Of a stretch of 64,000 nucleotides of DNA, positions 13,972 to 53,818 are shown in pieces; the stretch's first letter is position 1; the number at the start of each line of letters is the position of its first letter. Location of the stretch: positions 62,001 to 126,000 of the IMG/VR virus record IMGVR_UViG_3300049217_000071. One strand, 5' to 3'. Under the pieces are notes generated by a model. The model had not been told where the DNA came from. It saw nothing but the letters and a program-made list of their open reading frames with translations, and did no database searches. The position numbers and the translations under genes were made by a program.

Positions 13972-14283
13972 ATGGAACAGCCTGAGATATGTCCGCGTTG
14001 CCATTTAGAATGGAGCTTTCAAGATAGGTGGACTATCTGCCTCCCGTGTAATGTTGTTCTTTTCAAACACATAAAAGAAGTGTGTTGGTATAGTCCGTTG
14101 AATTCCGATTATGTTATCATGTCCAACATAGAAAACACCGCGGGCCACCCATTTTTAGCTTGGCATTACTCCCACAATATTTGTTCCTATGGATTAGATG
14201 GTGGGGGCGATCCTATTACTTTGCCCTGGCTTCCCTTCGACATAACGTCAGATCGTTTGAAACTTTTGCTACTGTTCTCGTAA
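13972..14283 (+). CDS. CxxC protein with C-terminal RLKLLLLFS
   Basis: see finding on shared C-terminus. Confidence 0.65.
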   Translation: MEQPEICPRCHLEWSFQDRWTICLPCNVVLFKHIKEVCWYSPLNSDYVIMSNIENTAGHPFLAWHYSHNICSYGLDGGGDPITLPWLPFDITSDRLKLLLLFS

Positions 14284-14287
14284 ACCT

Positions 14288-14359
14288 ATGAAACACTATC
14301 CTACTATCACCAAAGAGATTAGGCACGACCTATCAATACTTCCCTATAGTAGTATCTAA
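14288..14359 (+). pseudogene. orphaned N-terminal stub of the RNA-ligase-like gene
   Basis: MKHYPTITKEIRHDLSI vs MKLYPSIPRMQRNDIPSI at 15409. Confidence 0.75.
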
Positions 14360-14378
14360 CCAACATGGGGGTGTAGTC

Positions 14379-15449
14379 ATGGGCAAAATAGTGGGAAAGT
14401 GTATCGAATGTGGCAGAGAAAACAGACTAACACGAGGGTACTGTTCAACCTCTTGTTATTCGAGGTTGTTGCGATCTGGAAAACTGGATAGACTTCCTAT
14501 CATCCCACTTCCAAACGTTATGACTGGTCGTCAATCCGAAATGCTTACTGGACTAATGTTGGGAGATGGATGTCTATTCAAGTTCTCCGACAATGCTTTT
14601 CCGGTTCTATCGGTTGTCCGACAAAGAGGAGATGTAGGCTATTTGGATGATCGGTATCAAGAGTTCAAGTCGTTTTGTTTGAGTGGCATTCGTTTATATG
14701 AGGTCTTTGATGATCGAACGAACAAGACATATGAGGGGTGTAAGTTTACCACCAGAGGTTGCTCCGTTTTCACCCCCTTTTACGATGCGTGGTACGGTGG
14801 TGGAACAAAAACAGTACCAAGAGAGGTACGACTCTCGCCATTTGTGTGCTCTATATGGTTCTGTGATGATGGATGCGTTTTTGCAGACGATAGAAAGCGT
14901 CTCCATTTGAAACTGGCTACTCACGGTTTTCCGAATGAAGATACGGTATGGTTAGCTAAACGGCTGTCATCAAAGTTAGGAGAGCATTTCTATGTTGGAC
15001 ACGATCAGGGCCATGCATTCATTATGGCATCTGATGCGGCCACCAAGTCTTTCATTGGGTACATACAGGACATCATTCCATCCAGTATGGCTCGAAAGAT
15101 TACGTGGACAGACGAGCATTTTTTGATGGCCCGCTCTCGCCCACAGCTCAAAAACAGGCGCGTAGAGGATCTAAACGACAAGGAGTTTTCGTTGATGTCG
15201 TTTTTGTCCAGGTGCAAGTTGCCCCAATCATCCCTTGAGATGTGTACCAAAGTAGGTTGGATGGGCAAAACCGGTAGGACGCCATCAGCCTACAATAGGT
15301 ACCTGAAAAGGTTCTTGAGTGCGGGATGGATGAAGCCGACCAAGCTGGTCATACATGGTAAGAGCAACACCAAATACATGATCACTAACAAGGGAAGAGG
15401 AGTCTTACGTGAAGCTGTATCCTTCAATACCAAGAATGCAAAGGAATGA
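14379..15449 (+). mobile_element. free-standing double-motif LAGLIDADG endonuclease gene
   Basis: LTGLMLGDGC and SIWFCDDGC; C-terminal winged-helix-like tail. Confidence 0.9.
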
Positions 15450-16026
15450 TATTCCAAGCATCTACTTGTACTTGTTTGCGAAGGTCGACGGATCTAATAT
15501 CCGTGCGGAATGGAATAACAAACGAGGCTTCTACAAGTTTGGCACCCGCAATCAATTGACGGATGAGAAGACGATGCCTTTTGGCCGCTCTATCCCTTTG
15601 CTGCGAGATAAGTATGAAGCTGACCTGGCCAAGGTGTTCAAGGAGCAGGGTTGGAAGGACGCTATCTGTTTCTTCGAGTATTGGGGTGCCGAGTCTTTTG
15701 CCGGCAACCATAACTTTGAGGCCACGATGGATATTACCCTGATTGATGTCAACCCTTATAAAAAAGGAATACTGGTGCCGGTCGATTTCATCGAACTCTT
15801 CGGGCACCTTGATATACCAAGAGTTTGCTACCAAGGCCACGTCTCGACCGAGCTGTTTGACGGAGTCAAGCAATCCACTTTTCCTGGAATGACTTTCGAG
15901 GGTGTGGTGTGTAAGGGTGAGGAAGATGGTCGCATTGTGATGTTCAAGATCAAATCGCAGGCTTGGTTGGATAAATTGAGAACCTTTTGTAAAGGTGATG
16001 AAGGTTTGTTTGAGAGACTATCGTAA
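15409..16026 (+). CDS. RNA-ligase-like nucleotidyltransferase
   Basis: KVDGSN (motif I), FFEYWG, LIDV, FEGVVCK, FKIK. Confidence 0.75.
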   Translation: MKLYPSIPRMQRNDIPSIYLYLFAKVDGSNIRAEWNNKRGFYKFGTRNQLTDEKTMPFGRSIPLLRDKYEADLAKVFKEQGWKDAICFFEYWGAESFAGNHNFEATMDITLIDVNPYKKGILVPVDFIELFGHLDIPRVCYQGHVSTELFDGVKQSTFPGMTFEGVVCKGEEDGRIVMFKIKSQAWLDKLRTFCKGDEGLFERLS

Positions 16027-16034
16027 GGAATAAG

Positions 16035-17231
16035 ATGAGTAAACATAGCCCGGAAACTTGGAACGACTCCCATTTGTGGGACAGAATGACGCTCGCTCCT
16101 TCTATGGACAGCAAGAGTGAGATTAGCGCCAATTCAATCGGTATTATGCCGCTGATGAAGAAAATGTTGGAGTCTAAGGTAGGCCACCTAACTGAGTTTT
16201 ACGCAGAGGGCCATGTCAAAAAAGAAGAGCTTCAGCTGCCACAAGACAAAGAATTGCTGGCCAAACAAGACCACGGTAAGAAGTATTTGGACTGGCTTCA
16301 TGAATTGGGTGGCCGCTTGATCTACAAACACATCAGTGATGGTCAAGGCAGTACAGTCGCCATCTTTCTGTGGCAAGATTCCATAGTAGAATTCAATGTT
16401 GCTGGCACTTGGATGAGCTTCAGCGGCTTTTCTCATCAAGAAAGCTTTGTTCGAGGGATGTTGAAATCCCTCGAATCGCAATGGAAACCAACCACTGTAG
16501 CGGGTACTGTCTATGCCATCATGAGCCAGAACAGCCGTCTGAGTATGGGTTCCATAGGAAATGCCGGCATCCCGGTAGTAGAGGGCAACTACCATCCTGA
16601 GGTGATGAAAGGCTATAAATTCATTGTCAAAGACCTACAATCCTCGGCACCCTCCGGTCGCATTGTGGTAATGAAGGGTAAGCCGGGCACTGGCAAGACC
16701 CATTTGATCCGAGCTATGACTTTGGAAGTGCCAGACGCTATGTTCGTCTTGGTGTCTCCTGAGATGGTTCCCAGCCTGAGTGGTCCAGAACTATTGCCTC
16801 TCTTGTTGCAATATAAGAGTGGCGAAGGTCCTATCGTTTTGCTCTTGGAAGATGCTGACAAGTGTTTGGTAGCCAGAGACACAGACAACATCAATTCTAT
16901 CCAAGCTCTGCTGAACTTGAGCGATGGTATCTTGGGTTCCCTTTTGGACTTGCGTATTGTGGCCACTACTAATGCCGATGAGTTGGAGATGGAGCCGGCT
17001 ATGATGCGTCCAGGTCGTTTGAGTAAGATGCTAGATGTGGGGCCACTAGATGCTGAAACGGCTTGGAATATTTTCAAGCGATTGCTGCCAGATAATGATC
17101 CACCAGGTGAGTTGGCTCAAGAAGTCGCAATAACTTTGGCGGAAGTATACGCTTTGGCTCGCAAATATGGTTGGGAGCCCGAGGTTAGAAAAGTTGAAGA
17201 GAAAACCCCTGATCCGAACGAAGACTATTGA
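16035..17231 (+). CDS. AAA+ ATPase
   Basis: GKPGTGKT, LLLEDAD, LLN.SDG, TTN, RPGR. Confidence 0.92.
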   Translation: MSKHSPETWNDSHLWDRMTLAPSMDSKSEISANSIGIMPLMKKMLESKVGHLTEFYAEGHVKKEELQLPQDKELLAKQDHGKKYLDWLHELGGRLIYKHISDGQGSTVAIFLWQDSIVEFNVAGTWMSFSGFSHQESFVRGMLKSLESQWKPTTVAGTVYAIMSQNSRLSMGSIGNAGIPVVEGNYHPEVMKGYKFIVKDLQSSAPSGRIVVMKGKPGTGKTHLIRAMTLEVPDAMFVLVSPEMVPSLSGPELLPLLLQYKSGEGPIVLLLEDADKCLVARDTDNINSIQALLNLSDGILGSLLDLRIVATTNADELEMEPAMMRPGRLSKMLDVGPLDAETAWNIFKRLLPDNDPPGELAQEVAITLAEVYALARKYGWEPEVRKVEEKTPDPNEDY

Positions 17232-17286
17232 TCAGATTTGGGCATAAAATGGCCTTGATGTAGGACATCGTCCACAAGGAGATTTT

Positions 17287-17529: not shown

Positions 17530-17538
17530 GAAAACACA

Positions 17539-18516: not shown

Positions 18517-18528
18517 TATGGGTGATGG

Positions 18529-20036: not shown

Positions 20037-20208
20037 CGGAATTGATAGAGTTGACAACGAGACGGGTTATATATTGGATAACTGTATTACGTGTTGTAAG
20101 ATATGCAATTACGCCAAATCTACGATGCCTTACGAAGATTTCATTACGTGGATCGATAATCTTGTCAAATATCGAGTATCACTAAATAATACGGAGAATG
20201 TCCTATGA
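20035..20208 (+). pseudogene. HNH endonuclease C-terminal remnant
   Basis: no start; NGIDRVDNETGYILDNCITCCKICNYAK, same family as the 10193 and 24278 HNHs; stop overlaps NAMPT ATG. Confidence 0.88.
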
Positions 20209-21602
20209 ATGAGAATTACCTGTTTGATACTGACAGCTATAAAGCAAGCCATTATCTTCAGTATCCCGAAAAAACCACGAGTATGTTTTCTTACGTCGAA
20301 AGCAGGGGCGGAGATTACAATGCAACCGTTTTCTTTGGGCTACAATACTTCCTCAAGGCTTATCTTACTTATCGCGTTACGCCCAAGGATGTGGAAGAAG
20401 CTAAAGAGTTCTATACTGCTCATGGCGTGCCATTCAATTATGATGGTTGGATGTATGTTGCTAAAGACCTAAAAGGTAGGTTGCCTGTCAGGATTAGGGC
20501 AGTGCCAGAGGGAACTATCGTTCCAACCCACAATATCTTGGTAAGCATCGAATCGACCGATCCTAAGGCCTTTTGGGTTGTTTCCTGGTTGGAGACAATG
20601 TTGCTACGATACGTGTGGTATGGAACTACCGTAGCCACCAGAAGTCGTAGAATTAGGCAGACAATCTTGGAAGCTTTGCGAAAGACTGCCGATGCTCCTG
20701 ATACAGAAATCAGCTTCAAACTTCATGACTTTGGTTCTCGTGGGGTGAGCAGCCAGGAAAGTGCTATGCTTGGAGGCGCAGCTCATCTCATCAATTTTAT
20801 GGGCAGCGATACCATCGCGGGCATCAGATGCGCTAACAAATACTACGACTGCCCGATGGCAGGTTTTAGTATTCCTGCTGCGGAACACTCTTCTATCACT
20901 TCGTGGGGTAAAGAACACGAGGTAGATGCGTATGCCAACATGCTAACACAGTTTGCCAAACCAGGAGCTTTGGTAGTTGTGGTAAGCGATAGCTATGATT
21001 TGTGGAATGCCTGTGAGCATCTCTGGGGCGAACAGCTCAAGCAGAAAGTTATAGATTCCGGTGCGACGGTTGTAATTCGTCCTGATAGTGGCCATCCTCC
21101 GGCCGTAGTGCTCAAGACCCTACAGATATTGGATAGTAAGTTTGGACACACAATCAATACTAAGGGGTATAAAGTCTTGAACAATGTTAGGGTTATCCAA
21201 GGTGATGGCATCAATGAGCACTCGATAAGAGACATTCTGAATGAGTTTATGTGGGATAAATACAGTGCCACCAATGTTGCCTTTGGTATGGGTGGTCAGC
21301 TATTGCAAGGTCTCAACCGAGACACTCTCAAGTTTGCTATGAAGTGTTCTTCCATTACTGTCAATGGTGAAGTGCGAGATGTCTTCAAGGATCCGATCAC
21401 CGATCACGGTAAAGTAAGCAAGGCAGGACGCTTGGATCTGGTCAAACGAGATGGTCATTTTGAGACGATTGAGATTAGCCGAGGAGACCAGGCTTCTCAC
21501 GACAACTTCAGTGAGATGCAAACTGTCTATGAGAACGGTCAGATTTTGATTGACGATACGTTCGAGAATATCCGTGCTCGTGCTAAAGGAGAAATGGTAT
21601 AA
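20205..21602 (+). CDS. nadV: nicotinamide phosphoribosyltransferase (NAMPT)
   Basis: TDSYKASH, HDFGSRG, SIPAAEHS, VSDSYD, IRPDSG, IQGDG, FGMGG.LLQ, RDT..FA.K. Confidence 0.95.
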   Translation: MNENYLFDTDSYKASHYLQYPEKTTSMFSYVESRGGDYNATVFFGLQYFLKAYLTYRVTPKDVEEAKEFYTAHGVPFNYDGWMYVAKDLKGRLPVRIRAVPEGTIVPTHNILVSIESTDPKAFWVVSWLETMLLRYVWYGTTVATRSRRIRQTILEALRKTADAPDTEISFKLHDFGSRGVSSQESAMLGGAAHLINFMGSDTIAGIRCANKYYDCPMAGFSIPAAEHSSITSWGKEHEVDAYANMLTQFAKPGALVVVVSDSYDLWNACEHLWGEQLKQKVIDSGATVVIRPDSGHPPAVVLKTLQILDSKFGHTINTKGYKVLNNVRVIQGDGINEHSIRDILNEFMWDKYSATNVAFGMGGQLLQGLNRDTLKFAMKCSSITVNGEVRDVFKDPITDHGKVSKAGRLDLVKRDGHFETIEISRGDQASHDNFSEMQTVYENGQILIDDTFENIRARAKGEMV

Positions 21603-26369: not shown

Positions 26370-27608
26370 GTGGAGATGCTCCGCTTTAGAATGCTTGCCA
26401 GGGATGTCAATTCCATTCCCACACAATACCGAACTTGGGTTGTTCCCAATACACCAGATTATACGGGTCAGTTCTATACTGGTCTCAAATCTGGACCGGC
26501 CCCTTTTGTGGATGTTTTAGCTTTCGCTATCACTGACGATTCGGTCATTGCGGATTTCAACCTACCCTTACCAGCAGATTGGAATGCCGGCGCCCCAATT
26601 GTGCCTGTCGCTTTTCCTATCCAACTGAACCTACCTTTTCCGGTAGAAGATTCCCAACTGGCCATCATTGACGGTTATGCCTATATGTTTGGTGGCAAGC
26701 TGACTGACAAGATTTTTAGAGCTGACATCAATAATCCGGCCAATTGGTTTGATACTGGCGCCACTTTACCTACACCACTGTATGGTAGCTCCTTGGCCAT
26801 TGTCAGTGATACTATCTATCTATTTGGTGGGGATGATGGTTATGGAGCAGGCGAGGGGCCTCTGGGTGCTATTTACTCTGCACCTGTCAGCAATCCATTA
26901 GATTGGACTAATACCGGGCACACTTTACCAGAGCCTCTACTTTATTCCAGCTTGGGAATGTTTAGTGGAAAGCTGTATCTATTTGGTGGATTGACTCCTG
27001 CCGGAGCCACCGATGTTATCTATAGTGCTGCTACATCCAGTCCATTGAATTGGATTGCTGATGGCTATATACCGGTGCCAGTTTATGGTTCCAGTGTGGC
27101 GCAGTTGGATGGATATTGGTTCTTATATGGTGGGCAGCTAACCCCCGATGCAGCTACCGGCGCTATTTGGACGGCCTCGACTTCCGATCCTACTTTCTGG
27201 TATCCAGATGGATATTTGCCTTGGCCATGTTCTTTCGGACAGTTTGTTACGGCCGGCAATGATGGCTACTTGTTTGGACCGATGCCAGGTTCCGCACCTA
27301 TGGGATATACGCACATTGTGCAATCCCATATATCTGCTCCTGAAACTTGGATAGACATCAAGCGATTCATTCCGGCTAATATTTCTCACTCACAAGTGGC
27401 TATCATCTATGATCGAATATGGTTCTTTGGAGGTAGTGGGGAGACTGGTATTTTTGCTTGCAACCAGAATGTCAAGTATCCGCTGTATAGTCCGGTAGTA
27501 GAAGGTTATGGTCAGGCTACCCGCGTTCTTTTTCCAATGACGAACAATGTGGCTAATCCGTTCTTGGCATTAGGTTTTCCATATTGGAAAACCGATTATT
27601 CGATGTAA
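26370..27608 (+). CDS. Kelch-like repeat protein (possible virion protein)
   Basis: repeated YLFGG...IY.A....P..W...G.LP. Confidence 0.8.
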   Translation: MEMLRFRMLARDVNSIPTQYRTWVVPNTPDYTGQFYTGLKSGPAPFVDVLAFAITDDSVIADFNLPLPADWNAGAPIVPVAFPIQLNLPFPVEDSQLAIIDGYAYMFGGKLTDKIFRADINNPANWFDTGATLPTPLYGSSLAIVSDTIYLFGGDDGYGAGEGPLGAIYSAPVSNPLDWTNTGHTLPEPLLYSSLGMFSGKLYLFGGLTPAGATDVIYSAATSSPLNWIADGYIPVPVYGSSVAQLDGYWFLYGGQLTPDAATGAIWTASTSDPTFWYPDGYLPWPCSFGQFVTAGNDGYLFGPMPGSAPMGYTHIVQSHISAPETWIDIKRFIPANISHSQVAIIYDRIWFFGGSGETGIFACNQNVKYPLYSPVVEGYGQATRVLFPMTNNVANPFLALGFPYWKTDYSM

Positions 27609-27661: not shown

Positions 27662-28156
27662 ATGGAAGACTATAATTCTCCCGAGGCCGTCAAAGCACGA
27701 GCCGACCAAGAAGATCCTATTGTGATGTATCTCATCTACCACGAAGGTATTGGGATGGGTACGGGTAAGGCTTGAGCTCAATCAGGGCATGCGGCCGTGA
27801 TGGTGACGCTGGATTACTTCAAGCTGAAAGAAGAGTCCGTCAAACTACAGAGAGTGATACGAGATAATATGTCGTATCACGGTGAGTCCCCCGCTCCCGA
27901 ACTCTTGAAGTATAAAGAGATGGCCCCTTTACTTTCTATCTTTGGCGAGTGGCTCAATACTTCCTACCGCAAAGTGACATTGACCGCCAATGATAAAGAG
28001 TGGGCCAAGATCAAAGCTGAACCGATGTATAAAGCTATGGTGATAGATGCCGGTCTGACGCAGATACCGGCCGGTAGCGAAACGTTCATCGGTCTCTGGC
28101 CGATGCGTAAGAGTCAGCGTCCCAAGTGTATCAAACGTTTGCAAGCCTTGGAATAA
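27662..28156 (+). pseudogene. peptidyl-tRNA hydrolase Pth2-type gene with one in-frame TGA (27773-27775)
   Basis: MYLI...MGTGKA*AQSGHA, RKVTL, DAGLTQI..GS.T..GLWP. Confidence 0.85.
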
Positions 28157-28160
28157 AACG

Positions 28161-28814
28161 ATGAAGCTTGATTTCAAGATCAAAGAAGTTAGACCGAAGG
28201 TCTTCTTGTTCGAGTTCAAGGACACATACGATATGTGTATGCACTTCTTGCGTTATCAGGAATACTACGAGTCCGCCTCTTCTAAATACAGGGGCCATAA
28301 GTTTACCATCTTCGACTTTATGCGATGGTATTCCAAAACCTACGGCCACGGTGCTTTTACCTATTGCACTGATTGGGATGGTTTCAATATTCCTGGCTCT
28401 GTTATTAGGGAGATAGCAACCCGGGGCATTTTAGATTACAACAAGTATGATCGAGCTATGTGGGAAGGTTATTGCCACGGTGTCAATAAAGCTGGCAACA
28501 AAATCTATATCATTGGCGCTGTCAATGGTAGCAACGCCCTCAAGCACGAAGTGGCTCACGCCTTCTTTTACCTGCATCCAAAGTATAAGAAGGAGATGAC
28601 CAAGCTGGTCAAAGCTTTACCGGCTACTATCACAGATAAGATGAAGCATCATCTCAAAAGAGTAGGTTATACACCCAAGGTTTATGTAGATGAAATGCAA
28701 GCATACTTATCTACTGGACTAACGGAATTGTTTGGACACGATACTACTAAGTGGAAAACAGAACGTGAGCCATTTGAGAAAGCGTTCAACGAGTTTTACG
28801 GAGAATCAAAATGA
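28161..28814 (+). CDS. HExxH putative metallopeptidase
   Basis: FLRYQEYYES; LKHEVAHA; DEMQAY. Confidence 0.7.
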   Translation: MKLDFKIKEVRPKVFLFEFKDTYDMCMHFLRYQEYYESASSKYRGHKFTIFDFMRWYSKTYGHGAFTYCTDWDGFNIPGSVIREIATRGILDYNKYDRAMWEGYCHGVNKAGNKIYIIGAVNGSNALKHEVAHAFFYLHPKYKKEMTKLVKALPATITDKMKHHLKRVGYTPKVYVDEMQAYLSTGLTELFGHDTTKWKTEREPFEKAFNEFYGESK

Positions 28815-33130: not shown

Positions 33131-35002
33131 ATGTCATCAAATCGCATTACCGAGCTGGCTGATAAGATTACCCAGGCTCGATTGGACTATTACAATGGTC
33201 AGCCAACCGTTTCTGACAAGATTTTCGATGCTTGGGCCGATGAGCTTCGCACCCTGGACGCTAATCACATAGCTTTGACGGCTGTAGGTGCTCCTGTCGG
33301 CCCTTCCGAATGGAAGAAAGCTAAGCACCAGATCCCGATGGGATCTCTCAACAAAGTCAATCAACCTGCCGAAATGTTGGACTGGGCCAGTGATAAGAAC
33401 TGCAAGTCCTGGTTTATGACGGAAAAGCTGGACGGACTCTCTATAGAAGTGATCTATGAGGGTGGTAAGGTGGTACAAGCCATTACCCGAGGTGATGGTG
33501 AGACGGGCGAAGACATTACGGTCAACGTGATTCGTATGGGTGGAGTCAATCCCGATTTGAAAACTGACTTCAATGGTTCCCTTCGTGGTGAAATCATTAT
33601 GAAGAAGAGCATTCATCAGAAGTTCTTCGCTGATAAAGCCAATCCTCGCAATGCAGCTTCTGGTGTTTCCAAGCGTTTGGATGGTGTGGATGTGGATAAG
33701 CTCGACATTCTCTTCTACCAAGTTTTGGGTGATGTAGATTTCAAAACGGAAGAAGACCAGTTCAAGTGGTTGCAGAAGCATAAAGTCGGCACTCCCAACT
33801 ATTGGATCTGGAGTTCGGCTCTTGCCATCAATGTTATGTGGCGTGAATACCAAGACAAAGAGCGCGATAAGCTGGATTATGATATCGACGGACTGGTGGT
33901 TCGTATCAATGACATGGCCGATCAAATGGCTTGTGGTGATAAAGACCTCCGCCCCTTGGGTGCTATGGCCTTCAAGTTTGACAATGAGACCCGTGAGAGC
34001 ACTATCAAAGACATCATCTGGCAGGTGGGCAACAGTGGACGCCTAACTCCGGTGGCTGTGGTGGAGCCCGTTCTCCTGGTGGGAGCTATGGTTTCCCGAG
34101 CCAGCTTGTATAACATTGCCTACATTGAGGAATTGGGTTTGGATATCGGGGCCCGCGTCCTGGTGGCCCGAGCTAATGACGTGATTCCTCGCATTGAGGA
34201 GTTGGTCAAGGGTACCAAGACGGTAGCCAAGATGCCCAAGAAGTGTCCTGATTGTGGTGGAATAGTGGATATGCAGGGTGAGAACCTGATTTGCACCAAC
34301 ACGGAGAACTGCCGATCCCAGATCATTGGTCGCATCAAGAACTGGATCAAAGAACTCAACCTGTTGGAGTGGGGGGATTCTTTGGTGGAGAAGTTGGTGG
34401 ATGCTAAGAAGGTCAAGAACATTGCTGACCTCTATACTCTTCAAGTGGATGACATTTCCAAGTTGGATCGCTTGGGAGATAAGACGGCCAAGAAGTGTTT
34501 GGATATCTTGAACGCTAATAAGAATGTAGCTTTGGAAGTCTTTTTAGGCGCTTTATCCATTCCAACTATTGGGCAATCGACGATTAAATTAATAATGAAA
34601 GATGGTTGTGATACTTTAGAAAAGTTTGGTCAGTTAAGTAGCGTTCAATTTGAGCAGGTATCGGGAGTAGGTCCGGTCAAAGCGCGATTTTTAGCTGATG
34701 GACTCAAACATAATCAGCAACTAATCCTTGATTTGTTAAAAAATGGAGTGGAGATCAAAGAAATTGTTGATGGCAAATTGACTGGTAAAAGTTTTGCTAT
34801 TACTGGAACGCTCTCTATCAAGCGCGCTGAGGTTGAAAAATTGATTCAAGACAATGGCGGTGAAGTGAAAAGTAGCGTTGGAAAAGGATTGAACTACCTA
34901 ATTATTTCTGATCCACAATCTACCAGCAGTAAAGCACAAGCCGCCCGAAAGTTGGGTACCGTTCTTATTAACGAGGCACAATTTTTAGACTTGATTAGCT
35001 AA
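33131..35002 (+). CDS. ligA: NAD+-dependent DNA ligase
   Basis: EKLDG, TRGDG..GEDIT, NPRNAA, DGLVV, Zn finger, HhH, BRCT. Confidence 0.97.
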   Translation: MSSNRITELADKITQARLDYYNGQPTVSDKIFDAWADELRTLDANHIALTAVGAPVGPSEWKKAKHQIPMGSLNKVNQPAEMLDWASDKNCKSWFMTEKLDGLSIEVIYEGGKVVQAITRGDGETGEDITVNVIRMGGVNPDLKTDFNGSLRGEIIMKKSIHQKFFADKANPRNAASGVSKRLDGVDVDKLDILFYQVLGDVDFKTEEDQFKWLQKHKVGTPNYWIWSSALAINVMWREYQDKERDKLDYDIDGLVVRINDMADQMACGDKDLRPLGAMAFKFDNETRESTIKDIIWQVGNSGRLTPVAVVEPVLLVGAMVSRASLYNIAYIEELGLDIGARVLVARANDVIPRIEELVKGTKTVAKMPKKCPDCGGIVDMQGENLICTNTENCRSQIIGRIKNWIKELNLLEWGDSLVEKLVDAKKVKNIADLYTLQVDDISKLDRLGDKTAKKCLDILNANKNVALEVFLGALSIPTIGQSTIKLIMKDGCDTLEKFGQLSSVQFEQVSGVGPVKARFLADGLKHNQQLILDLLKNGVEIKEIVDGKLTGKSFAITGTLSIKRAEVEKLIQDNGGEVKSSVGKGLNYLIISDPQSTSSKAQAARKLGTVLINEAQFLDLIS

Positions 35003-38416: not shown

Positions 38417-39880
38417 ATGGGAAGCGTCAAAGTTGAAGAATCTATTAAACAATGGACTCTTAACTATACTGACATAATTTTGAATAGTAATAAATTCTAT
38501 TCACTTGAGGTAGTTAAAACTAATAAAGGCTATTTCTTATACACCCAATATGGCAGGGTCGGAGGCACCAAAGCCAAGGAATATCGCCAATGCTCCGATC
38601 AAGCTGATGCCGAATCTGAAGCTACCAAAATCGTCAAAGCTAAAACCAAGAAAGGATATGTAGAAGTATCTTTGGTCAAGTCGGATGTCGGAAGTGATGC
38701 TGCCCAAGCTAAAATAGAAAAAGTCTCAGCTACCACTGAACAACTAAAGAAAGCTGGTATTACCGTTAAAGAAGAGCCTGCCGTTGCCAGCAAACTTCAT
38801 ACAGAGGTTCAGGATTTAGTCAGAACATGGTTCGGCGTAACTCAAGAGTTCGTCGATCTTAACCTTGACACATCCAAATGTTCTTTAGGACAACTTTCAA
38901 TTCTACAGATTACCAAAGGCAAAGACCTATTGGATGAAGCTCGCAAAATTGTTCATATGACAAAACCAGATGAACAAGAGCTTAATAAGTTGACTAATTC
39001 TTACTATAGCAATATTCCTCACAATTTTGGTTATACCAGAATTGATGCCAACGCTTTGCGTTTGGACTCAGACGTTAAGATTGATAAGGCTTTTGATATG
39101 CTTGACGTTCTAAATCAAGCTAAAGATGTCGAAGCAGTTATCTCCAAGAAGAGTGCAGTCGATGCACAGTATGCTACTCTCAATGCCGACCTTGAGTTCA
39201 TTGAGCAGGGTACTCCCACGTTCAAGTGGATTGAGAAGATGGTTCTGGAAACCCGAGCCAGCAACCACAGCGGCTTAGGTAAACTGAAGGTTCACAAGGT
39301 CTTCCGTGTCACTCGTCACGATGAGGACAAGCGATTCATTGAGAATTGCCAAGTCATCGCCAAGGAGTGCGGTAAGTTCGTGCCCTCTGATGTGTATGCT
39401 GGTTTGGTCAAGAACCGTCCTGATGTTCCCAAGGCATTGGAAGACCTCTACCACAAAGCAAATGTCCTTCCTGGTTGGCACGGAACTCGTAGAGCCAATA
39501 TGATTGGTATTACCACCAAGGGACTTCTTATTCGTCCTTCTGGTGTTATTCACGCTGGTAGTATGTTTGGAGATGGCTGTTATTTTGCTTCATCTTCGTC
39601 AAAATCAATTAATTATTGTGATGTTAAGGGATCATATTGGGCACAAGGAAATAATAAAACAGGATATCTATTTCTGTGTGATGTAGCTTTTGGAAATCAA
39701 AAAATGGCTACTGGCTCACATTATTATAATTCAAATAACATCAAGCCATATCACAGCGTATGGGCTAAAGCTGGTCAAGGCGGAGTTATTAATGATGAAA
39801 TGATTACTTACCATGCTACGGGACCAAATCAGCAGCATGCTATAAAATATATAATCGAGTTTGAGACGCAGGTGAAGTAA
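38417..39880 (+). CDS. PARP-family ADP-ribosyltransferase (WGR + regulatory + catalytic)
   Basis: NKFY..E, QYGRVG, K.KKGY; LGQLS..QI; YYS.IPH; WHGT, G.MFG.G.YFA..SSKS.NY, NDE (H-Y-E). Confidence 0.93.
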   Translation: MGSVKVEESIKQWTLNYTDIILNSNKFYSLEVVKTNKGYFLYTQYGRVGGTKAKEYRQCSDQADAESEATKIVKAKTKKGYVEVSLVKSDVGSDAAQAKIEKVSATTEQLKKAGITVKEEPAVASKLHTEVQDLVRTWFGVTQEFVDLNLDTSKCSLGQLSILQITKGKDLLDEARKIVHMTKPDEQELNKLTNSYYSNIPHNFGYTRIDANALRLDSDVKIDKAFDMLDVLNQAKDVEAVISKKSAVDAQYATLNADLEFIEQGTPTFKWIEKMVLETRASNHSGLGKLKVHKVFRVTRHDEDKRFIENCQVIAKECGKFVPSDVYAGLVKNRPDVPKALEDLYHKANVLPGWHGTRRANMIGITTKGLLIRPSGVIHAGSMFGDGCYFASSSSKSINYCDVKGSYWAQGNNKTGYLFLCDVAFGNQKMATGSHYYNSNNIKPYHSVWAKAGQGGVINDEMITYHATGPNQQHAIKYIIEFETQVK

Positions 39881-40867: not shown

Positions 40868-41350
40868 TTGATCGAAATAATTACTGGCGACCTCTTGGCG
40901 TCTAAAGAAAAGTATCTGTTGCATCAGACTAACTGTATCTCTACCAAAGGTGCAGCCGGAGTTGCCAAATCTATTTTTGATAAGTATCCTTATGCTGATT
41001 GCTATGCTGATCGTATCGAAACGTCCAAGCCCGGAACAATCGATATTCGGGGTAATGATCAAGATCAGAGGTTGATAATCAATCTTCACGGTCAGTATTA
41101 TCCTGGTCGCTCCCGATATCCTCTTTCAAGTTTAGATGGTCTAGCTCCTCGTCAGAAATACTTTTACAATGGTTTATTGCGTGTAGCCAAGATCGAGAAC
41201 CTGAAAAGTATAGCATTGCCTTGGAGGGTTGGTTGTGGTCTTGGTGGCGGAGACTGGGAATGGTATTTGGGAACGCTGACTAACTTCGCTAACTATGTAG
41301 GTGAAAAGGGCGTCAGAGTTTGTGTTTACCGTAGAGAAGGAGACGAGTAA
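40868..41350 (+). CDS. macrodomain ADP-ribose hydrolase
   Basis: I.GDLL, HQTNC, GAAGVAK.I, SIALP..VGCGLGGG.W. Confidence 0.92.
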   Translation: MIEIITGDLLASKEKYLLHQTNCISTKGAAGVAKSIFDKYPYADCYADRIETSKPGTIDIRGNDQDQRLIINLHGQYYPGRSRYPLSSLDGLAPRQKYFYNGLLRVAKIENLKSIALPWRVGCGLGGGDWEWYLGTLTNFANYVGEKGVRVCVYRREGDE

Positions 41351-41781
41351 TGGCTATCAAATTCTATCGCACTAAAGATCCGCACGGGTATATGGGCAAC
41401 TTCTATCGAGCTAGAATGTTCATCTATGGCCGTTGGTGGAACTGGGTGGAGTCTCCTTATCAGGCAGAGAAGAGTTTAGATCGAGCGGAACAGGATATGA
41501 TCTGGCAGGCACAGAAGCCAATGGAGGCCAGAGACCTGGGACAGAAGGTCAAGATGCGAGAGGGCTGGGATCTCGTCAAGGATATGGTGATGTATGATTG
41601 CGTCATGGCCAAGTTCTTGCAACACAAGAACATCCGCGACCAATTGATCGCTACCGGAGACGAAGAGCTAATCGAAGATTCACCCGTCGATTGGTATTGG
41701 GGTTGCGGCAAAGATGGAACTGGACAGAATCATCTGGGCCAGATTCTTATGCGAGTTAGAAAAGAGTTGCAGGGCGAGTAA
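41350..41781 (+). CDS. NADAR (YbiA) family protein
   Basis: FY, NF, VE..YQA.K, W..VK..VM, AKF.QH, L..TG...L.E.SP.D.YWG, GQN.LG.ILM.VR. Confidence 0.95.
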   Translation: MAIKFYRTKDPHGYMGNFYRARMFIYGRWWNWVESPYQAEKSLDRAEQDMIWQAQKPMEARDLGQKVKMREGWDLVKDMVMYDCVMAKFLQHKNIRDQLIATGDEELIEDSPVDWYWGCGKDGTGQNHLGQILMRVRKELQGE

Positions 41782-44051: not shown

Positions 44052-44678
44052 ATGAAATTATTCAATACTGTTCAAGAGCTATGGTCGTATTGCGCCTTTT
44101 GTCCCCTCTGCGAGGATATTTGCCGTGACGTCATTGTAGATGTAGCGATGGACTCCGATTTCAATATTGAGACCTCTTTCGAGAAGAAGGATCAATTCCT
44201 TCACATAACTTGTGAGAGGCGTTTGTGGAGAAGCCGCCCCATCGATAAGAAAAAGAACAGGACGCACGAAACTGTTTGTAAGTATGTGATTGATTGCACG
44301 AAAAACACTTTCACGCTGTTATCTCAACCCGATACGCCAGAACAGGCATCCTGTTATATACAGAGTATGTGTGAGTCATGCGCTAACACTTTTACTTACG
44401 GTGCAGATATGGAACTGTATGCACATAGTCAAAAGGTTTTCAATATTGGGTTGGAGCGGGAGTCAATTGAATTGTCTGATGACACCCACAGATATGAACT
44501 CAACTACTATTACAGCAATGACACGCCACCAGGCGTAGGTATGTTTGTTTACCGCAGTCTTTTAGATGCGGAAGGCGATCCCGACAATTTGGGCATCAAA
44601 CTTCCTCTCATGGAATTAGATTTCTACGACCCTAAGAAAGTCATCAACAAACTCAAGACACTTATTCTTTTCAGCTAA
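44052..44678 (+). CDS. CxxC protein with C-terminal KLKTLILFS
   Basis: shared C-terminus. Confidence 0.7.
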   Translation: MKLFNTVQELWSYCAFCPLCEDICRDVIVDVAMDSDFNIETSFEKKDQFLHITCERRLWRSRPIDKKKNRTHETVCKYVIDCTKNTFTLLSQPDTPEQASCYIQSMCESCANTFTYGADMELYAHSQKVFNIGLERESIELSDDTHRYELNYYYSNDTPPGVGMFVYRSLLDAEGDPDNLGIKLPLMELDFYDPKKVINKLKTLILFS

Positions 44679-46045: not shown

Positions 46046-46750
46046 ATGAAGGCAACCGTAGAAAAAGTCATCCAAACTTATCTTGAAGTAAAAAGTATCC
46101 GTAAAGCCGCCGAATTGACAGGCTATTCAAAATCTGGTGTTCAGCATTTGTTGACGACCAATAATGTCGCCTTGTTTCCACGCAGCAGGGGTGGGGCCGA
46201 AAATTCTTCTCGCAAAGCCATTTTGGATTTGGACGCTTCTAATCCAAGAAGGTTAGTTCGTAATACCGGCTATATGACGGATTTATACATTGACAAGAAG
46301 ATGTCAGTCCCTGAAATTGCTCTCCAATTAGGAATAAGTACCGCAACAGTTTTTACTGGTTTAGAACGGTGTGGCATTGCATCAAGAACAATAGAAGAAG
46401 CATTGACCGGTAAGCCAAGGCCAGCCTCACAAGGATCCAAAAACCATAACTGGAAAGGTGGACTATCTGGCTGGAGGAAACTGGCCCGTGGTAGGCTCAA
46501 CGAACATTTTGTTCGCCCAATAATGAAACGAGATAACTTCTCCTGTCAGTGGTGTGGCTCGAAGAAGAATATCGTAGTTCATCACCACAAACGCTCGTTT
46601 ATGGAGATTGTCAATCTAGTCAGACAACAGTGTGATGAAAAAGATATAGACCAGTTTGTCAAACTCATAATTAGCGAACATTCATTAGATGACGGAATTA
46701 CGCTTTGCAAGAAGTGCCACGACAATCACCATAAGGAACACGGGAAATGA
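46046..46750 (+). mobile_element. free-standing HNH endonuclease gene
   Basis: two HTH, NHNWKGG, RDNF.CQWCG, VHH, GITLCKKCH...H. Confidence 0.9.
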
Positions 46751-47220
46751 TAGTAGCTTTTACGGGTCATAGGCCAGAAAAAATCGGAGGATACAGACTC
46801 CCTAACCCCACTTACATTCACGTCTGTCAAGAGATCGAAAAGACTCTGACGGAACTCCGGCCCTATATGGTCATCACGGGAATGGCTTTGGGTGTCGACC
46901 AATGGGCAGCTAACATAGCCCGTAAGATGAAGATTCCTTATATCGCTGCCATTCCTTTCGAGGGCCAAGAGTCCAAATGGCCTAAGCGGAGTCAGCGGAC
47001 TTATCGCGCTCTCCGTAAGCTGGCTATGGGTGAAACCATTGTCAGCCCTGGAGAGTACTCGGTAGAGAAGATGCAGATCCGTAATCAGTGGATGGTAGAT
47101 AACGCGGATGCCGTCATTGCCGTGTGGGATGGAACTCGGGGTGGAACCAAGAACTGTATTGAGTATGCTAAATCTCAGAACAAGCAAATTTATTACATTG
47201 ACCCGCGCCTTGACAAGTGA
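46747..47220 (+). CDS. SLOG superfamily YspA/DUF1273 protein
   Basis: FTGHRP, GMALGVDQWAA, PF.GQ...W, RN.WMVD, VWDG..GGT.NC..YA. Confidence 0.9.
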   Translation: MIVAFTGHRPEKIGGYRLPNPTYIHVCQEIEKTLTELRPYMVITGMALGVDQWAANIARKMKIPYIAAIPFEGQESKWPKRSQRTYRALRKLAMGETIVSPGEYSVEKMQIRNQWMVDNADAVIAVWDGTRGGTKNCIEYAKSQNKQIYYIDPRLDK

Positions 47221-48283: not shown

Positions 48284-48299
48284 AGGTCGAGAGGTTATA

Positions 48300-49112: not shown

Positions 49113-49115
49113 AAT

Positions 49116-49201: not shown

Positions 49202-49207
49202 AATAAT

Positions 49208-49293: not shown

Positions 49294-49301
49294 ATTATTG
49301 A

Positions 49302-50782: not shown

Positions 50783-50846
50783 TGAAACCTCTTTCGACAG
50801 GTGGTATAGAAGAGACATACTAATAATTACGGGATTATTGCCATAG

Positions 50847-51323
50847 ATGGTCGAGTTTAGTAATAGGGAAAGTTTGCTGGCTTGGGCGGCAGGTTTGTTC
50901 GATGGTGAAGGAACAATCTATATTTCCAAGGCTAGAATTAGAGCTTCCGTTCATATGACAGATCTGGATATCTTGGAAACTTTTCGCTCTAACTTTGGTG
51001 GTTTCATCCATCCACAGAAGAAGCAAAAAGAACATCATAAAAAGTCGTGGAGATGGTCTTTGCAGGCTTCAGATAAGGCAATGTCTTTCTTGACGGATAT
51101 ATTACCGTTTTTACACGCCAGGAGATCAAAAAGGGTGGCAGAGGCAATTAGCTGCTATTCTCTGGCGATGCAGGAAAGAAAATCCAAGCAAAATAAGGTA
51201 AAGGAAGTAAGGGAGAAGATTAGAGAATTAGGAAAAACTGATATGACGCATAAAGACATATCAATATTATTCCATGTAGATAGAAGCTACGTTTCCCATG
51301 TGCTAAATGGGTCTTACGTATAA
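50847..51323 (+). mobile_element. single-motif LAGLIDADG endonuclease gene in tRNA region
   Basis: LAWAAGLFDGEGTIYI; FL..ILPFL; C-terminal HTH. Confidence 0.88.
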
Positions 51324-51326
51324 TAT

Positions 51327-51402
51327 GGTGTCGTTTGTCATCTAGTGATGATGGCTGACTGTGAATCAGCTAAGGCGAGTGCAATCCTCGTACGACACCC
51401 CA
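51327..51402 (+). tRNA. tRNA-His (GTG) with encoded G-1
   Basis: G-1:C73, gctga-ctGTGaa-tcagc; T-loop TGC rather than TTC. Confidence 0.9.
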
Positions 51403-51410
51403 AGCCAAAT

Positions 51411-51485
51411 GGCTCGTTCGTCTATCGGTTAGGACAAGAGGCTTTCAACCTCTGAAGAGGAGTTCGACTCTCCTACGGGTCACCA
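51411..51485 (+). tRNA. tRNA-Glu (TTC)
   Basis: agagg-ctTTCaa-cctct, CCA. Confidence 0.93.
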
Positions 51486-51503
51486 GCAGCACAAACCAGT
51501 AAT

Positions 51504-51578
51504 GGTCCCATCGTCTAGCGGCTAGGACGCGACCCTCTCAAGGTCAAAACACGGGTTCGATTCCCGTTGGGATCACCA
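51504..51578 (+). tRNA. tRNA-Glu (CTC)
   Basis: gacc-ctCTCaa-ggtc, CCA. Confidence 0.93.
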
Positions 51579-51610
51579 AAGCTATCAATAGCTTGATATA
51601 GTTAGAGTAT

Positions 51611-51685
51611 GCCTCTGTGGTCCAAGGGATGGGCAGCCGCCTTCTAAGTGGCCTTATGTAGGTTCGAATCCTACCAGAGGTGCCA
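51611..51685 (+). tRNA. tRNA-Arg (TCT)
   Basis: gccgc-ctTCTaa-gtggc, CCA. Confidence 0.92.
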
Positions 51686-51696
51686 GATAGTTAGAT

Positions 51697-51771
51697 GCGC
51701 TTATGGTCTAATGGAAGGGCAACAGCCTACGAAGCTGTCCTATGCAGGTTCGAGTCCTGCTAAGCGCGCCA
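51697..51771 (+). tRNA. tRNA-Arg (ACG)
   Basis: acagc-ctACGaa-gctgt, CCA. Confidence 0.93.
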
Positions 51772-51772
51772 A

Positions 51773-52210
51773 ATGAAAGTCTGCACAAAGTGCAAATTCG
51801 ATTATCCTGCACCATTGGAAGATCATTTCAATAGAAGAAGTTCAGCTAAAGACGGATTTCAATACCGTTGTAAAAAGTGTATGGTTGAAGTTCATAAAGA
51901 GCACTACCAAGAGAATGTGTCCTACTATAAAAAGAAGGCGCTAAAACACAACGCTAAATATAGACTAAGAAATCTTCAGTATATGGTTGATTATCTCAAA
52001 CAGCACCCATGCGTTGACTGTCCCGAAATAGATCCGGTAGTACTAGAATTTGATCATCGTGGTAATAAAGATTACAATGTCGGCGAGATGTCGAATTACA
52101 GTTTGAGCACTATAATAAAAGAGATTGCGAAGTGTGATATAAGGTGTGCCAATTGTCATAAACGAAAGACGGCCAAGCAATTCAACTACTATCAAGGTAT
52201 TACTTTGTAA
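51773..52210 (+). mobile_element. HNH endonuclease gene between tRNA-Arg genes
   Basis: CTKC, CKKC, PCVDC, LEFDH, EIAKC.IRCANCH. Confidence 0.88.
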
Positions 52211-52224
52211 GAATATGTCTCTAT

Positions 52225-52299
52225 GTCTCTATGGTCCAATGGAAGGGCAGCGGCCTTCGAAGCCGCCTTATGTAGGTTCGAGTCCTATTAGAGATACCA
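52225..52299 (+). tRNA. tRNA-Arg (TCG)
   Basis: gcggc-ctTCGaa-gccgc, CCA. Confidence 0.92.
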
Positions 52300-52302
52300 C
52301 AT

Positions 52303-52379
52303 ACGCCTGTAGCTCAGTTGGATAGAGCGCAACCCTGCGAAGGTTGAGGTCATCGGTTCGAATCCGATTAGGCGTGCCA
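52303..52379 (+). tRNA. tRNA-Arg (GCG)
   Basis: caacc-ctGCGaa-ggttg, A20, G73, CCA. Confidence 0.92.
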
Positions 52380-52381
52380 AA

Positions 52382-52403
52382 AGCTCCGCAAGGAGCTATT
52401 TTT
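52382..52403 (+). terminator. intrinsic terminator after tRNA cluster
   Basis: AGCTCC-gcaa-GGAGCT then ATTTTT. Confidence 0.7.
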
Positions 52404-52407
52404 ATTT

Positions 52408-52860
52408 GTGGAGCCTGAAATGAAAGCACATGAGCTGGCCACGATTACTCAGCAAGCTATTACCAAGCGAAACAACGAGAGACCTGCCCAACTCTACAAA
52501 GAGTTGATGGCATCGATGGAATCTATAGCTAAAACTGGATATGATCACATTGATTTTCTCTTCAGTGATCCACCTGAGGTGATAGCGGAAGTACTTGACT
52601 GTCTCCGAAAAGATGGTTATAGTCTCGGTAAGTTAGAGAAGGGTGTTGTTAGAATTACTTGGGGCAAGAATGTCCAATGCGAATTCGATATTGCTTGGGT
52701 AGGTCGTTGCAAAGAGCCAGCAGGTAAGACTGGGTTTTGTGTTGAGCACACATCTCGTAGATGCACTTGCGGTAGGCAAGCTGTCCGAGAATGTGAAGCT
52801 ACCATTGGCGCTTTTGTGTGTGGACATCTAACTTGTGGCAAATGCCGCCACCAACACTAA
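52408..52860 (+). CDS. hypothetical protein with Cys-rich C-terminus
   Basis: 150-aa ORF. Confidence 0.65.
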   Translation: MEPEMKAHELATITQQAITKRNNERPAQLYKELMASMESIAKTGYDHIDFLFSDPPEVIAEVLDCLRKDGYSLGKLEKGVVRITWGKNVQCEFDIAWVGRCKEPAGKTGFCVEHTSRRCTCGRQAVRECEATIGAFVCGHLTCGKCRHQH

Positions 52861-52861
52861 A

Positions 52862-53089
52862 ATGGATGACGATGATGATAAGCTGACTCTGCGTGATAAG
52901 TTGGCTGCTGCCGCTTTACCCGCACTGATGCAACGATACAATGATCACGTCTCCTCCAAGTGGACTATGATGAAGAATGGCAACACCATCACCACGGAAG
53001 CCTTTCGAGAAGATGCGGAGATCATTTCCGTTATGGCTTACAAGCTTGCCGATGCAATGCGCAAGGCCCGATTGAAGGCCTTTACCTAA
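52862..53089 (+). CDS. conserved phage protein (LRD..A..A...AY..ADAM..AR)
   Basis: motif common in small phage proteins. Confidence 0.7.
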   Translation: MDDDDDKLTLRDKLAAAALPALMQRYNDHVSSKWTMMKNGNTITTEAFREDAEIISVMAYKLADAMRKARLKAFT

Positions 53090-53103
53090 TAGAATGGAGC
53101 TAC

Positions 53104-53409
53104 ATGCCCCGACCAGAATTCGTAACGAATGAAGACCTACAACGATGGTCAGACAAGATAGATAACGATCCACTGATGTCGCCAGCCTTGGCGCAAAGCC
53201 CTCTAATAAGAGAAGTCTGTTTAGCAGGACGGTGGTTGAACGAGAAACTGATAGAGCTGGATTGTCCCGACCATATCATTGGCTGTATTATGTATACGGC
53301 CGGAGAGATTTGTTTTGGACGTTCCGATCCTTGGAAAGTGCATCAAGATATCCTGGATAGGTATGTCAATAACACGCTCGTGATTGATCCGCCAGATGAA
53401 TCCAACTGA
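53104..53409 (+). CDS. hypothetical protein
   Basis: GGAG RBS. Confidence 0.6.
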   Translation: MPRPEFVTNEDLQRWSDKIDNDPLMSPALAQSPLIREVCLAGRWLNEKLIELDCPDHIIGCIMYTAGEICFGRSDPWKVHQDILDRYVNNTLVIDPPDESN

Positions 53410-53818
53410 AACTAAACTCTCGGCTATGGAGAGCTTCGTCAAACTATTTGATGAAGAGCAGCCCACCTGTATCTATTGCAAAACTCTCTGTGGGATCAGT
53501 TCACGGACAGTAGCTAATGATGGTAAGATTTGGACTACCAATACCTACAGTTGTATAGAGTGTAAAGAAACTGTCAATACCTATGTAGTGGATGGTCTCC
53601 AGACTCTTTTTGATCCGCTTAGGAAGATGCCAGTTTGTTATGACTTCCGATTGTCTTGCAATGAGCTGGTTCTGTGGTATGGTGATAACCCAGAAAACTT
53701 CTTGGTTGGCAATAGGGTGATGAGCGTACATTGTGCGAAAATCCCCACTTTTGTCATGGATTTTTCCGACAAAAACAAACTGTATCGTAAGCTCAAGACT
53801 TACCTACTATTTTCCTGA
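53396..53818 (+). CDS. CxxC protein with C-terminal KLKTYLLFS
   Basis: shared C-terminus. Confidence 0.7.
   Translation: MNPTETKLSAMESFVKLFDEEQPTCIYCKTLCGISSRTVANDGKIWTTNTYSCIECKETVNTYVVDGLQTLFDPLRKMPVCYDFRLSCNELVLWYGDNPENFLVGNRVMSVHCAKIPTFVMDFSDKNKLYRKLKTYLLFS

Follow-up and report, generated by a model that had tools for sequence, protein, structure and literature searches.

We show that an uncultivated jumbo phage ends about 4-6% of its proteins, mostly small, fast-evolving proteins of unknown function, with the same terminal helix motif (basic-x-x-x-L/Y-x-x-F-x-COOH), which looks like a common handle for a still unknown partner. The window analysed here is a stretch of 64,000 nucleotides (positions 62,001 to 126,000 of the IMG/VR record IMGVR_UViG_3300049217_000071), and unless stated otherwise the positions below are those of the window. 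Three dispersed proteins of the window that end in LFS belong to an undescribed multigene family, termed class 1 here, which has 7 firm copies plus 1 doubtful copy in this 268-kb phage genome, about 24 in a complete 480-kb relative (mostly one tandem array), and at least 237 clusters in metagenomes. A second, shorter ending, L-x-[AVP]-F-x-COOH, termed class 2 here, sits on about 36 BLAST-unrelated small ORFans. A shared docking handle is the best reading of these data, with a probability of about 0.5, but no partner was found, and a purely structural role remains a serious rival.

Results

The features considered are as follows, all being on the + strand.

13972..14283 (+), own103, class-1 member, short form (103 aa, ending LLLLFS), with CPRC at 7-10 and CLPC at 23-26; the tail has a 5-residue deletion.
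14221..14280 (+), C-terminal module of own103 (LPWLPFDITSDRLKLLLLFS).
44052..44678 (+), own208, class-1 member, long form (208 aa, ending TLILFS), with putative Zn knuckles C17/C20 and C107/C110.
44595..44675 (+), C-terminal module of own208 (last 27 aa, predicted strand-turn-helix, ..LPLMELDFYDPKKVINKLKTLILFS).
53396..53818 (+), own144, class-1 member (140 aa from the ATG at 53396; 144 aa from the TTG at 53384, where the ORF opens; ending TYLLFS), with invariant C25, C28, C53 and C56.
53735..53815 (+), C-terminal module of own144 (..IPTFVMDFSDKNKLYRKLKTYLLFS).
13342..13965 (+), class-2 carrier, a 207-aa Cys-rich protein ending NVLKPFL-COOH, 6 nt upstream of own103.
1..397 (+), class-2 carrier, a 148-aa ORF that starts 49 nt before the window and ends YRLSNLTAFL-COOH.
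1881..2141 (+), class-2-like ending DRIIKLAVFA-COOH on an 86-aa ORF.
62933..63964 (+), class-2 carrier, a 343-aa ORFan ending ELKPLAPFI-COOH.

The LFS ending is far beyond chance. Of the 414 called genes of the whole genome, 7 end in three hydrophobic residues followed by F-[STQ], against 0.02 expected from the internal rate and 0.09 from shuffled tails. It is noted that the genes were called by a longest-ORF heuristic and that the genome is 62% complete, so the counts are approximate. With a tail HMM built only from database proteins, seven genome ORFs rank 1-7 of 2,687, every match ending on the last residue, with 44 bits for own208, 44 bits for own144 and 8.0 bits for own103, the last being still above every non-family ORF. 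The doubtful copy, own157 (genome 144205-144678, ending KLLVFT), is not recovered by this independent HMM.

The last ~25 residues of the members, LPxFxPD[FL]S[DN]xxKLxxK[IL]KT[YL]xxFS-COOH, are nearly invariant, while the bodies diverge beyond sequence recognition. All 150 best of the 237 database clusters match at the C-terminus, with F at -2 in 161/164, S at -1 in 148/164, T at -6 in 152/164 and K/R at -9 in 164/164, and the tail is exactly terminal in about 98% of members. The 13 orthologs of own208, at 31-78% identity, all end KTLILFS. The tail identity is 0.68 versus 0.40 for the body in own208, and 0.65 versus 0.20 in own144. At the fixed syntenic loci the family genes are only 29-36% identical while the neighbouring genes are 60-82% identical. 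The selection acts at the protein level, with third codon positions being random, Ser using both TCN and AGC, Leu using 6 codons, and the downstream DNA being unconserved. The family expands in tandem arrays and also sits at fixed syntenic loci, with own144 always lying just upstream of MoxR-VWA in relatives. No shared upstream motif was found, and most copies sit inside operons.

The sequence-only reading had taken the three LFS proteins as unrelated CxxC proteins with no other evident similarity, which holds only at the sequence level. BLASTP between the three finds only the tail (26 aa, E 0.005). However, the three proteins share N-terminal putative zinc knuckles, and the AF2 models of own208 (pLDDT 84.8) and own144 (pLDDT 86.7) have the same predicted architecture, namely an N-helix, the CxxC, a beta-meander and a C-helix (194-207 in own208 and 126-139 in own144), and hit the same set of BFVD viral structure predictions. 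Body-only profiles link own208, own156 and, weakly, own103 to one short class (hhalign 38-58% for own103), although high-scoring controls were other zinc-knuckle proteins, so that sequence alone cannot prove or exclude body homology. Thus the condition under which that reading would itself be refuted, that the proteins are full-length paralogs, is largely fulfilled for these three. Moreover, the long module occurs only on this one kind of small protein (all 150 best hits are 34-222 aa) and not on the varied payload domains that had been proposed.

The two Cys pairs required for a zinc ribbon or zinc knuckle are present, with C17, C20, C107 and C110 invariant in A1 and C25, C28, C53 and C56 invariant in A4, the sets that share the Cys positions of own208 and own144, respectively, and 137 of 148 database members have at least one CxxC, the first at about residue 13. 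No described family was matched: Pfam and PHROGs searches of the window proteins gave nothing, and PHROGs on all 35 members of A4 gave no family at E<1e-3. Nor was a known fold found, with Foldseek against PDB and AFDB clusters giving TM<0.3, the wide VIA search giving best Z of 5.3 and 4.6, below the stated noise of 7-8, and the Atlas search returning only generic beta-sheets. Only uncharacterised BFVD phage proteins match, aligning over the full length at TM 0.6-0.68, but since cluster look-ups returned only unnamed metagenomic proteins these hits could not be tied to tail-bearing sequences. The deposited phage genomes searched gave no match for own208 or for a consensus-like member, and literature searches found no description of the family or motif.

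The looser (A/V/P)-F-x endings that were noted at 397 (LTAFL), 2141 (KLAVFA), 13965 (LKPFL) and 63964 (LAPFI) are also real. They do not match the long tail profile, but belong to the second enriched class. The pattern [AVP]F.$ gives 4 versus 0.68 expected in the window and 9 versus 2.03 outside it, while L.[AVP]F.$ gives 7 versus 0.22 here and 19 versus 0.39 in the relative G001, an enrichment of 30-50-fold. Class-2 endings are conserved in orthologs and selected at the protein level. All 5 orthologs (54-60% identity) of the 207-aa protein end N[VI]LKPFL. The G001 ortholog of the 148-aa ORF ends HRLSNLTAFM, with identity over the last 8 residues of 0.88 versus 0.44 for the body, and that of the 343-aa ORFan, which has no Pfam match, ends DLKTLIPFV. 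The ending at 2141 fits [KR](-9)..L(-5)..F(-2) but has no ortholog in the relatives G001-G005, so this is the weakest case. The class-2 carriers fall into 36 BLAST body clusters and have no Pfam match, although the bodies were compared only by BLAST and could be remote homologues.

The two classes share one core, [KR](-9)-hydrophobic(-8)-[L/Y](-5)-F(-2)-x-COOH, forming one face of a terminal helix, which in class 2 occurs as a short ending (R-x-x-x-L-K-A-F-W/L). This is the strongest C-terminal signal in the two related proteomes, with 10/414 versus 0.04 expected in this genome and 32/709 versus 0.12 in the relative. In an unbiased scan L(-5) with F(-2) is the top residue pair, and a control window at -21..-30 shows nothing comparable.

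Discussion

Based on these results we infer that in class 1 the helix is part of the fold, packing on the sheet, and that its conserved basic and polar positions, together with the strictly terminal Phe-x-COOH, serve as a common handle read by one shared partner, phage- or host-encoded and not identified. The fast-evolving bodies would supply the different specificities or activities, making a set of adaptors or effectors plugged into one hub. The idea of a terminal docking or sorting signal thus survives in a better form than originally proposed, but it remains inference. Searches of the phages for an encoded reader were all negative: no PDZ_2 or S41 protease was detected in G000 or G001, and no gp45-like or beta clamp in G000, G001 or G003, with the gp45-C and Gp23 searches being uninformative because their controls gave no signal. 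Note also that the class-1 helix is predicted with high confidence (pLDDT 87-94) and has a hydrophobic arc wider than 180 degrees, as expected for a buried core element rather than a free tail.

A bolder and only tentative extension is that a clade of environmental jumbo phages uses the motif as a proteome-wide C-terminal address that plugs dozens of small, rapidly diversifying proteins, including the tandemly expanding zinc-ribbon family, into one hub, with the phage's own ClpP1/P2 protease, the virion or a host machine as candidates. This would be a short-linear-motif/hub network of the kind known from eukaryotes and their viruses, not so far described for phages. Most genes of giant phages are ORFans with no handle for study, and here a single short, terminal motif ties together dozens of them. 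If no hub exists, the family is still a clear example of extreme body divergence around a fixed terminal helix.

Lineage-specific expansions of small zinc-ribbon proteins in jumbo phages are already known, e.g., about 35 copies in Bacillus phage G (Iyer et al. 2021, PMC7824862), where many small paralogs of unknown function in one giant phage genome were suggested to be transcription factors or DNA-binding proteins. No sequence relation to those proteins was shown, and the present family is defined by a nearly invariant terminal 25-aa module and a predicted beta-meander body, and is absent from all deposited phage genomes searched.

By contrast, it is possible that the ending is a purely structural remnant, with all carriers descending from one rapidly diverging small-protein superfamily in which the C-terminal amphipathic helix is the folding core, a plug on the sheet or bundle, and the only part that cannot change, and with no shared partner existing. 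This is consistent with the helix being predicted as part of both models, with the full-length alignment of the BFVD relatives, with the wide hydrophobic arc, with the restriction of the long module to one architecture, and with the presence of class-2 endings inside the class-1 tandem array of G001, which suggests common descent. However, the near-invariant polar positions (T-6, K-7, K/R-9, K-13 and S-1) and the rule of exactly one residue after Phe in ~98% of members are more than packing usually demands, and the class-2 carriers range from 56 to 382 aa with different compositions and Cys content.

It is unlikely, though not excluded, that the ending is a degron or protease handle that targets these proteins, or cargo bound to them, to a Clp-type protease, so timing the removal of early proteins or the destruction of host targets. 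The phage encodes two tandem cellular-type ClpP genes (ClpP1/ClpP2), scoring 148-168 bits to ClpP subfamily models versus 51-63 bits to the head-maturation model and conserved in G001-G004, the ORFan just downstream ends PFF-COOH in 4 of 5 genomes, and jumbo-phage ClpP has been read as deployed against the host (PMC7824862). However, no ClpX zinc finger or clear Clp unfoldase was found in the phage, the tails end F-S or F-[WLTI] within a predicted helix while ClpX tags are generally unstructured and end in LAA-like residues, and co-occurrence within one clade is uninformative.

Similarly doubtful is a sorting signal for incorporation into the virion as capsid or ejected proteins, one of the options of the sequence-only reading. 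Many small proteins share one address, as expected for packaged proteins of jumbo phages, and a MoxR-vWA/peptidase pair, proposed as a virion-assembly chaperone in jumbo phages (PMC7824862), lies directly after own144 in all relatives. However, the carriers are scattered among metabolic and replication genes, not in structural modules, and the motif, at the extreme C-terminus with no sign of processing, does not correspond to the T4 capsid targeting sequence, which is usually described as N-terminal and cleaved off.

Still less probable is a sliding-clamp-binding tail, where L-x-x-F-x at the C-terminus plugs into a clamp pocket. The L(-5)-x-x-F(-2)-hydrophobic(-1) core of class 2 may resemble the second half of a PIP box and the T4 gp45-binding tails, but besides the absence of a detected clamp noted above no PolB was found in G000, G001 or G003, position -6 is T in 152/164 and never Q, and the context is a predicted helix rather than disordered. 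None of the large replication-type proteins carries the ending, and a different, canonical-looking QLSSMF sits near the end of a 1229-aa ORF.

Finally, chance, compositional bias or a DNA-level element (terminator, promoter or recombination site) overlapping the gene ends, for which only the short length of the class-2 motif could be adduced, is refuted by the P values from 1e-9 to 1e-66 against internal rates, by the free variation of synonymous codons with unconserved flanks, and by the replication of the enrichment outside the window and in a second genome.

Genomic context of the terminal motif

The window lies in a single 268,344-bp virus contig, which CheckV rates as 62% complete and which was assembled from a moss metagenome, with near relatives occurring in lake-water and soil metagenomes, while no deposited phage genome is close. 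The genes are tightly packed and mostly on the + strand, including NAMPT, UvrD, a Kelch propeller, a NAD-dependent ligase, a WGR-PARP, a MoxR plus vWA/metallopeptidase pair, an HSP90-like ATPase and PurA, as well as 17 tRNAs. Related IMG/VR contigs of 153-481 kb share strong synteny. The 17 tRNA genes lie in clusters within 3331-52379 of the window, with several isoacceptors per amino acid (Val x3, Leu x4, Arg x6, Gly x2, Glu x2, Met). It is also noted that an NAD/ADP-ribose gene set (NAMPT, NAD-dependent DNA ligase and a eukaryote-like WGR-PARP_reg-PARP) is present at window 20205-21602, 33131-35002, 38417-39880 and 41350-41781, where the ortholog of 41350-41781 in a relative carries a NADAR domain, and that relative also has a second PARP plus adjacent isocitrate lyase and malate synthase.

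The three window proteins with the LFS ending, named here own208, own144 and own103 after their lengths in residues, have ORFs and endings exactly as described in the sequence-only reading. A scan of the whole genome found more copies, all on the + strand, which in genome coordinates are as follows.

27775-28185 (+), copy ending ..TMVVFS
46635-47105 (+), copy ending ..TILVFQ
164525-164959 (+), copy ending ..NLVIFS
156172-156735 (+), copy ending ..TYLTFM
144205-144678 (+), doubtful copy ending ..KLLVFT

By eye, the DNA right after the copy at 164525-164959, from ~164,985 onward, reads like the start of a tRNA gene (..GTAGCTCAGCGG..). Seven of the 414 called genes end with hydrophobic x3-F-[STQ], against 0.02-0.09 expected, where it should be noted that the gene calls are heuristic. 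In order to avoid circularity, we built a tail HMM only from database proteins, and this HMM places seven genome ORFs at ranks 1-7 of 2,687, with own208 and own144 scoring 44 bits each, the others scoring 18.5, 12.5, 12.1, 8.2 and 8.0, and the best non-family ORF scoring 6.4. Every match ends on the last residue.

The class-1 family and the relatedness of its bodies

The orthologs of own208, at 31-78% identity, all end with KTLILFS. One exhaustive search of 1.84 billion representative proteins with a 36-position tail profile returned 237 clusters at E<=1e-3, where the 150 best hits are all 34-222 aa long and all match at the C-terminus. The consensus is LP-x-F-x-P-D-[FL]-S-[DN]-x-x-K-L-x-x-K-[IL]-K-T-[YL]-x-x-F-S-COOH, with F at -2 occurring in 161/164, S at -1 in 148/164, T at -6 in 152/164, K/R at -9 in 164/164 and D at -19 in 156/164, and most members have one or two CxxC, the first at about residue 13. 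The copies occur in tandem, with three on a 1.6-kb contig, two fused into one reading frame in another case (P0166), and a ~12-kb array at 405.5-417.2 kb of the complete relative G001, which has about 24 copies. This array comprises about 20 consecutive small genes of the tail family, interspersed with genes that carry the short class-2 ending discussed below, two of them on the opposite strand. No Pfam or PHROG family matches, and all database members are unnamed metagenomic proteins.

The sequence-only reading regarded the three proteins as having no evident similarity apart from their CxxC and common ending. With the tails removed, BLAST single-linkage joins own208 to the ~110-aa short class (125 proteins), while own144 falls in a second group of 35. 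Body-only hhalign gives 88% for the short class versus residues 96-168 of the long class, 67% for the short class versus the family protein own156, 38-58% for the short class versus own103, and only 4% between the own144 group and the rest. The controls show a 95th percentile of 8%, but a few unrelated zinc-knuckle proteins reach 69% on short matches, and the sequence evidence is therefore suggestive only. The question is decided by the predicted structures. The AlphaFold2 models of own208 (pLDDT 84.8, pTM 0.81) and own144 (pLDDT 86.7, pTM 0.78) have the same layout, namely an N-terminal helix, CxxC, an antiparallel beta-meander and a C-terminal helix, and both retrieve the same set of uncharacterised 'uncultured Caudovirales phage' models in BFVD, at TM up to 0.68 with only 10-19% identity. 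By contrast, nothing in PDB, AFDB clusters or the ESM Atlas matches above noise. Thus, the three proteins are best read as divergent paralogs, which is clear for own208 and own144 and probable for own103, and the proposal that they are unrelated payloads is wrong for these three.

Within ortholog groups, the tail identity to the window protein is 0.65-0.68 whereas the body identity is 0.20-0.40. Moreover, at conserved syntenic positions the family genes are 29-36% identical, while their neighbours (PARP, MoxR, vWA and others) are 60-82% identical. The conservation acts on the protein, as third codon positions are at random level, identical residues share a codon only 35% of the time, the terminal Ser uses both TCN and AGC, and the downstream DNA is unconserved.

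The class-2 endings and the unified motif

The looser endings pointed out in the sequence-only reading do not match the long module, but they are not noise either. Once class 1 is removed, [AVP]-F-x-COOH occurs 13 times versus 2.7 expected, with 4 versus 0.68 in the window and 9 versus 2.03 outside it, and in G001 it occurs 27 times versus 4.9 expected. The sharper form L-x-[AVP]-F-x-COOH gives 7 versus 0.22 (P 4e-9) here and 19 versus 0.39 (P 8e-26) in G001, and the consensus is ..R-[YLM]-x-x-L-[KT]-A-F-[WLTI]-COOH. The 41 carriers fall into 36 body clusters when the bodies are compared by BLAST only, with five of these clusters being ortholog pairs between the present genome (G000) and G001, and the carriers are mostly ~125 aa long, mostly lack CxxC and have no Pfam match. 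The orthologs keep the exact end, as seen for the 207-aa protein at window 13342-13965, all five orthologs of which end with N[VI]LKPFL. The last 8 residues are 0.62-0.88 identical versus 0.44-0.56 for the bodies, and the codon usage again shows selection at protein level. Some class-2 endings sit inside the class-1 array of G001, so the two classes grade into each other. Note also that the gene pair formed by the LKPFL protein and own103 is flanked, as judged by eye, by the following two genes.

Window 12992-13282, a GroES-like co-chaperonin just upstream of the pair
Window 14379-15449, a 356-aa ORF with a LAGLIDADG-like motif (..LMLGDGCL..) just downstream of the pair, possibly a homing endonuclease

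When both classes are aligned on the Phe, they share [KR](-9), hydrophobic(-8), [L/Y](-5), F(-2), x(-1), COOH, which is one face of a terminal helix. This pattern occurs in 10 of 414 genes here (0.04 expected, P 6e-21) and in 32 of 709 genes in G001 (0.12 expected, P 3e-66), although the two genomes belong to one clade and are not independent. The looser form [LY]..F.$ covers 15/414 and 45/709 genes. In an unbiased scan of all residue pairs in the last ten positions, L-5&F-2 is the top pair in both genomes, while the same scan at positions -21..-30 finds nothing comparable.

Possible roles of the motif

The data thus show a real family with a shared predicted fold, a strictly terminal motif that is selected at protein level, fast-evolving bodies, tandem expansion, and recurrence of the motif core on apparently unrelated ORFans, and the shared terminal signal across many small proteins is real. 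What the motif does can only be inferred. The class-1 helix is probably part of the fold, given its high pLDDT and, in our reading of the conservation pattern, a hydrophobic arc of more than half the helix. However, two features go beyond what packing needs, i.e., the invariance of polar and basic positions and the rule of exactly one residue after Phe. Together with class 2, these features favour recognition of the free C-terminus by a common partner, although no such partner has been identified, and we put the probability of this docking-handle reading at about 0.5. That the motif is instead a structural remnant is a less likely but serious alternative.

The phages encode no detectable PDZ domain, S41 protease, gp45 clamp, beta clamp or ClpX zinc finger. 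They do encode a tandem pair of cellular-type ClpP genes, conserved in G001-G004, and in the present genome the locus at 172508-175223, outside the window, comprises these two genes followed by a 478-aa ORFan, with the C-terminus of the ORFan being ..PFF-COOH in 4 of 5 genomes. This keeps a protease-linked reading alive but unproven. Window 52960-56780 holds a conserved gene string that consists of a ~100-aa ORFan, own144, a MoxR AAA+ (about 80% identical in relatives) and then a vWA protein with an N-terminal metallopeptidase domain (DUF2201), where the ORFan overlaps the own144 start by 14 nt. The MoxR-vWA pair directly after own144 is conserved and has been proposed as a virion-assembly chaperone in jumbo phages (PMC7824862), but nothing links it to the tail.

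The nearest described phenomenon is the lineage-specific expansion of zinc-ribbon proteins in phage G (PMC7824862), and literature searches found no description of the present family or motif. In terms of logic, the nearest cases appear to be a viral multigene family with a constant C-terminal docking element (poxvirus ANK/PRANC), or hub-binding C-terminal motifs such as HbYX, the SspB tail, clamp-binding motifs and the SSB tip. The defining features of each were checked, and they are either not fulfilled or left undecided. Concerning the clamp-binding motifs, it is noted that a 1229-aa ORF with no Pfam match, at genome 239149-242838, ends with ..QLSSMFGTKRGVF (..QLSSLFGNKKGVF in G001), which contains a sequence like the bacterial beta-clamp-binding motif QL[SD]LF. 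Finally, we note that window 26370-27608 encodes a 412-aa Kelch beta-propeller that passes the Pfam KLHDC2/KLHL20/DRC7 Kelch model (57 bits versus the cut-off of 50), and that in eukaryotes KLHDC2 reads C-terminal degrons.
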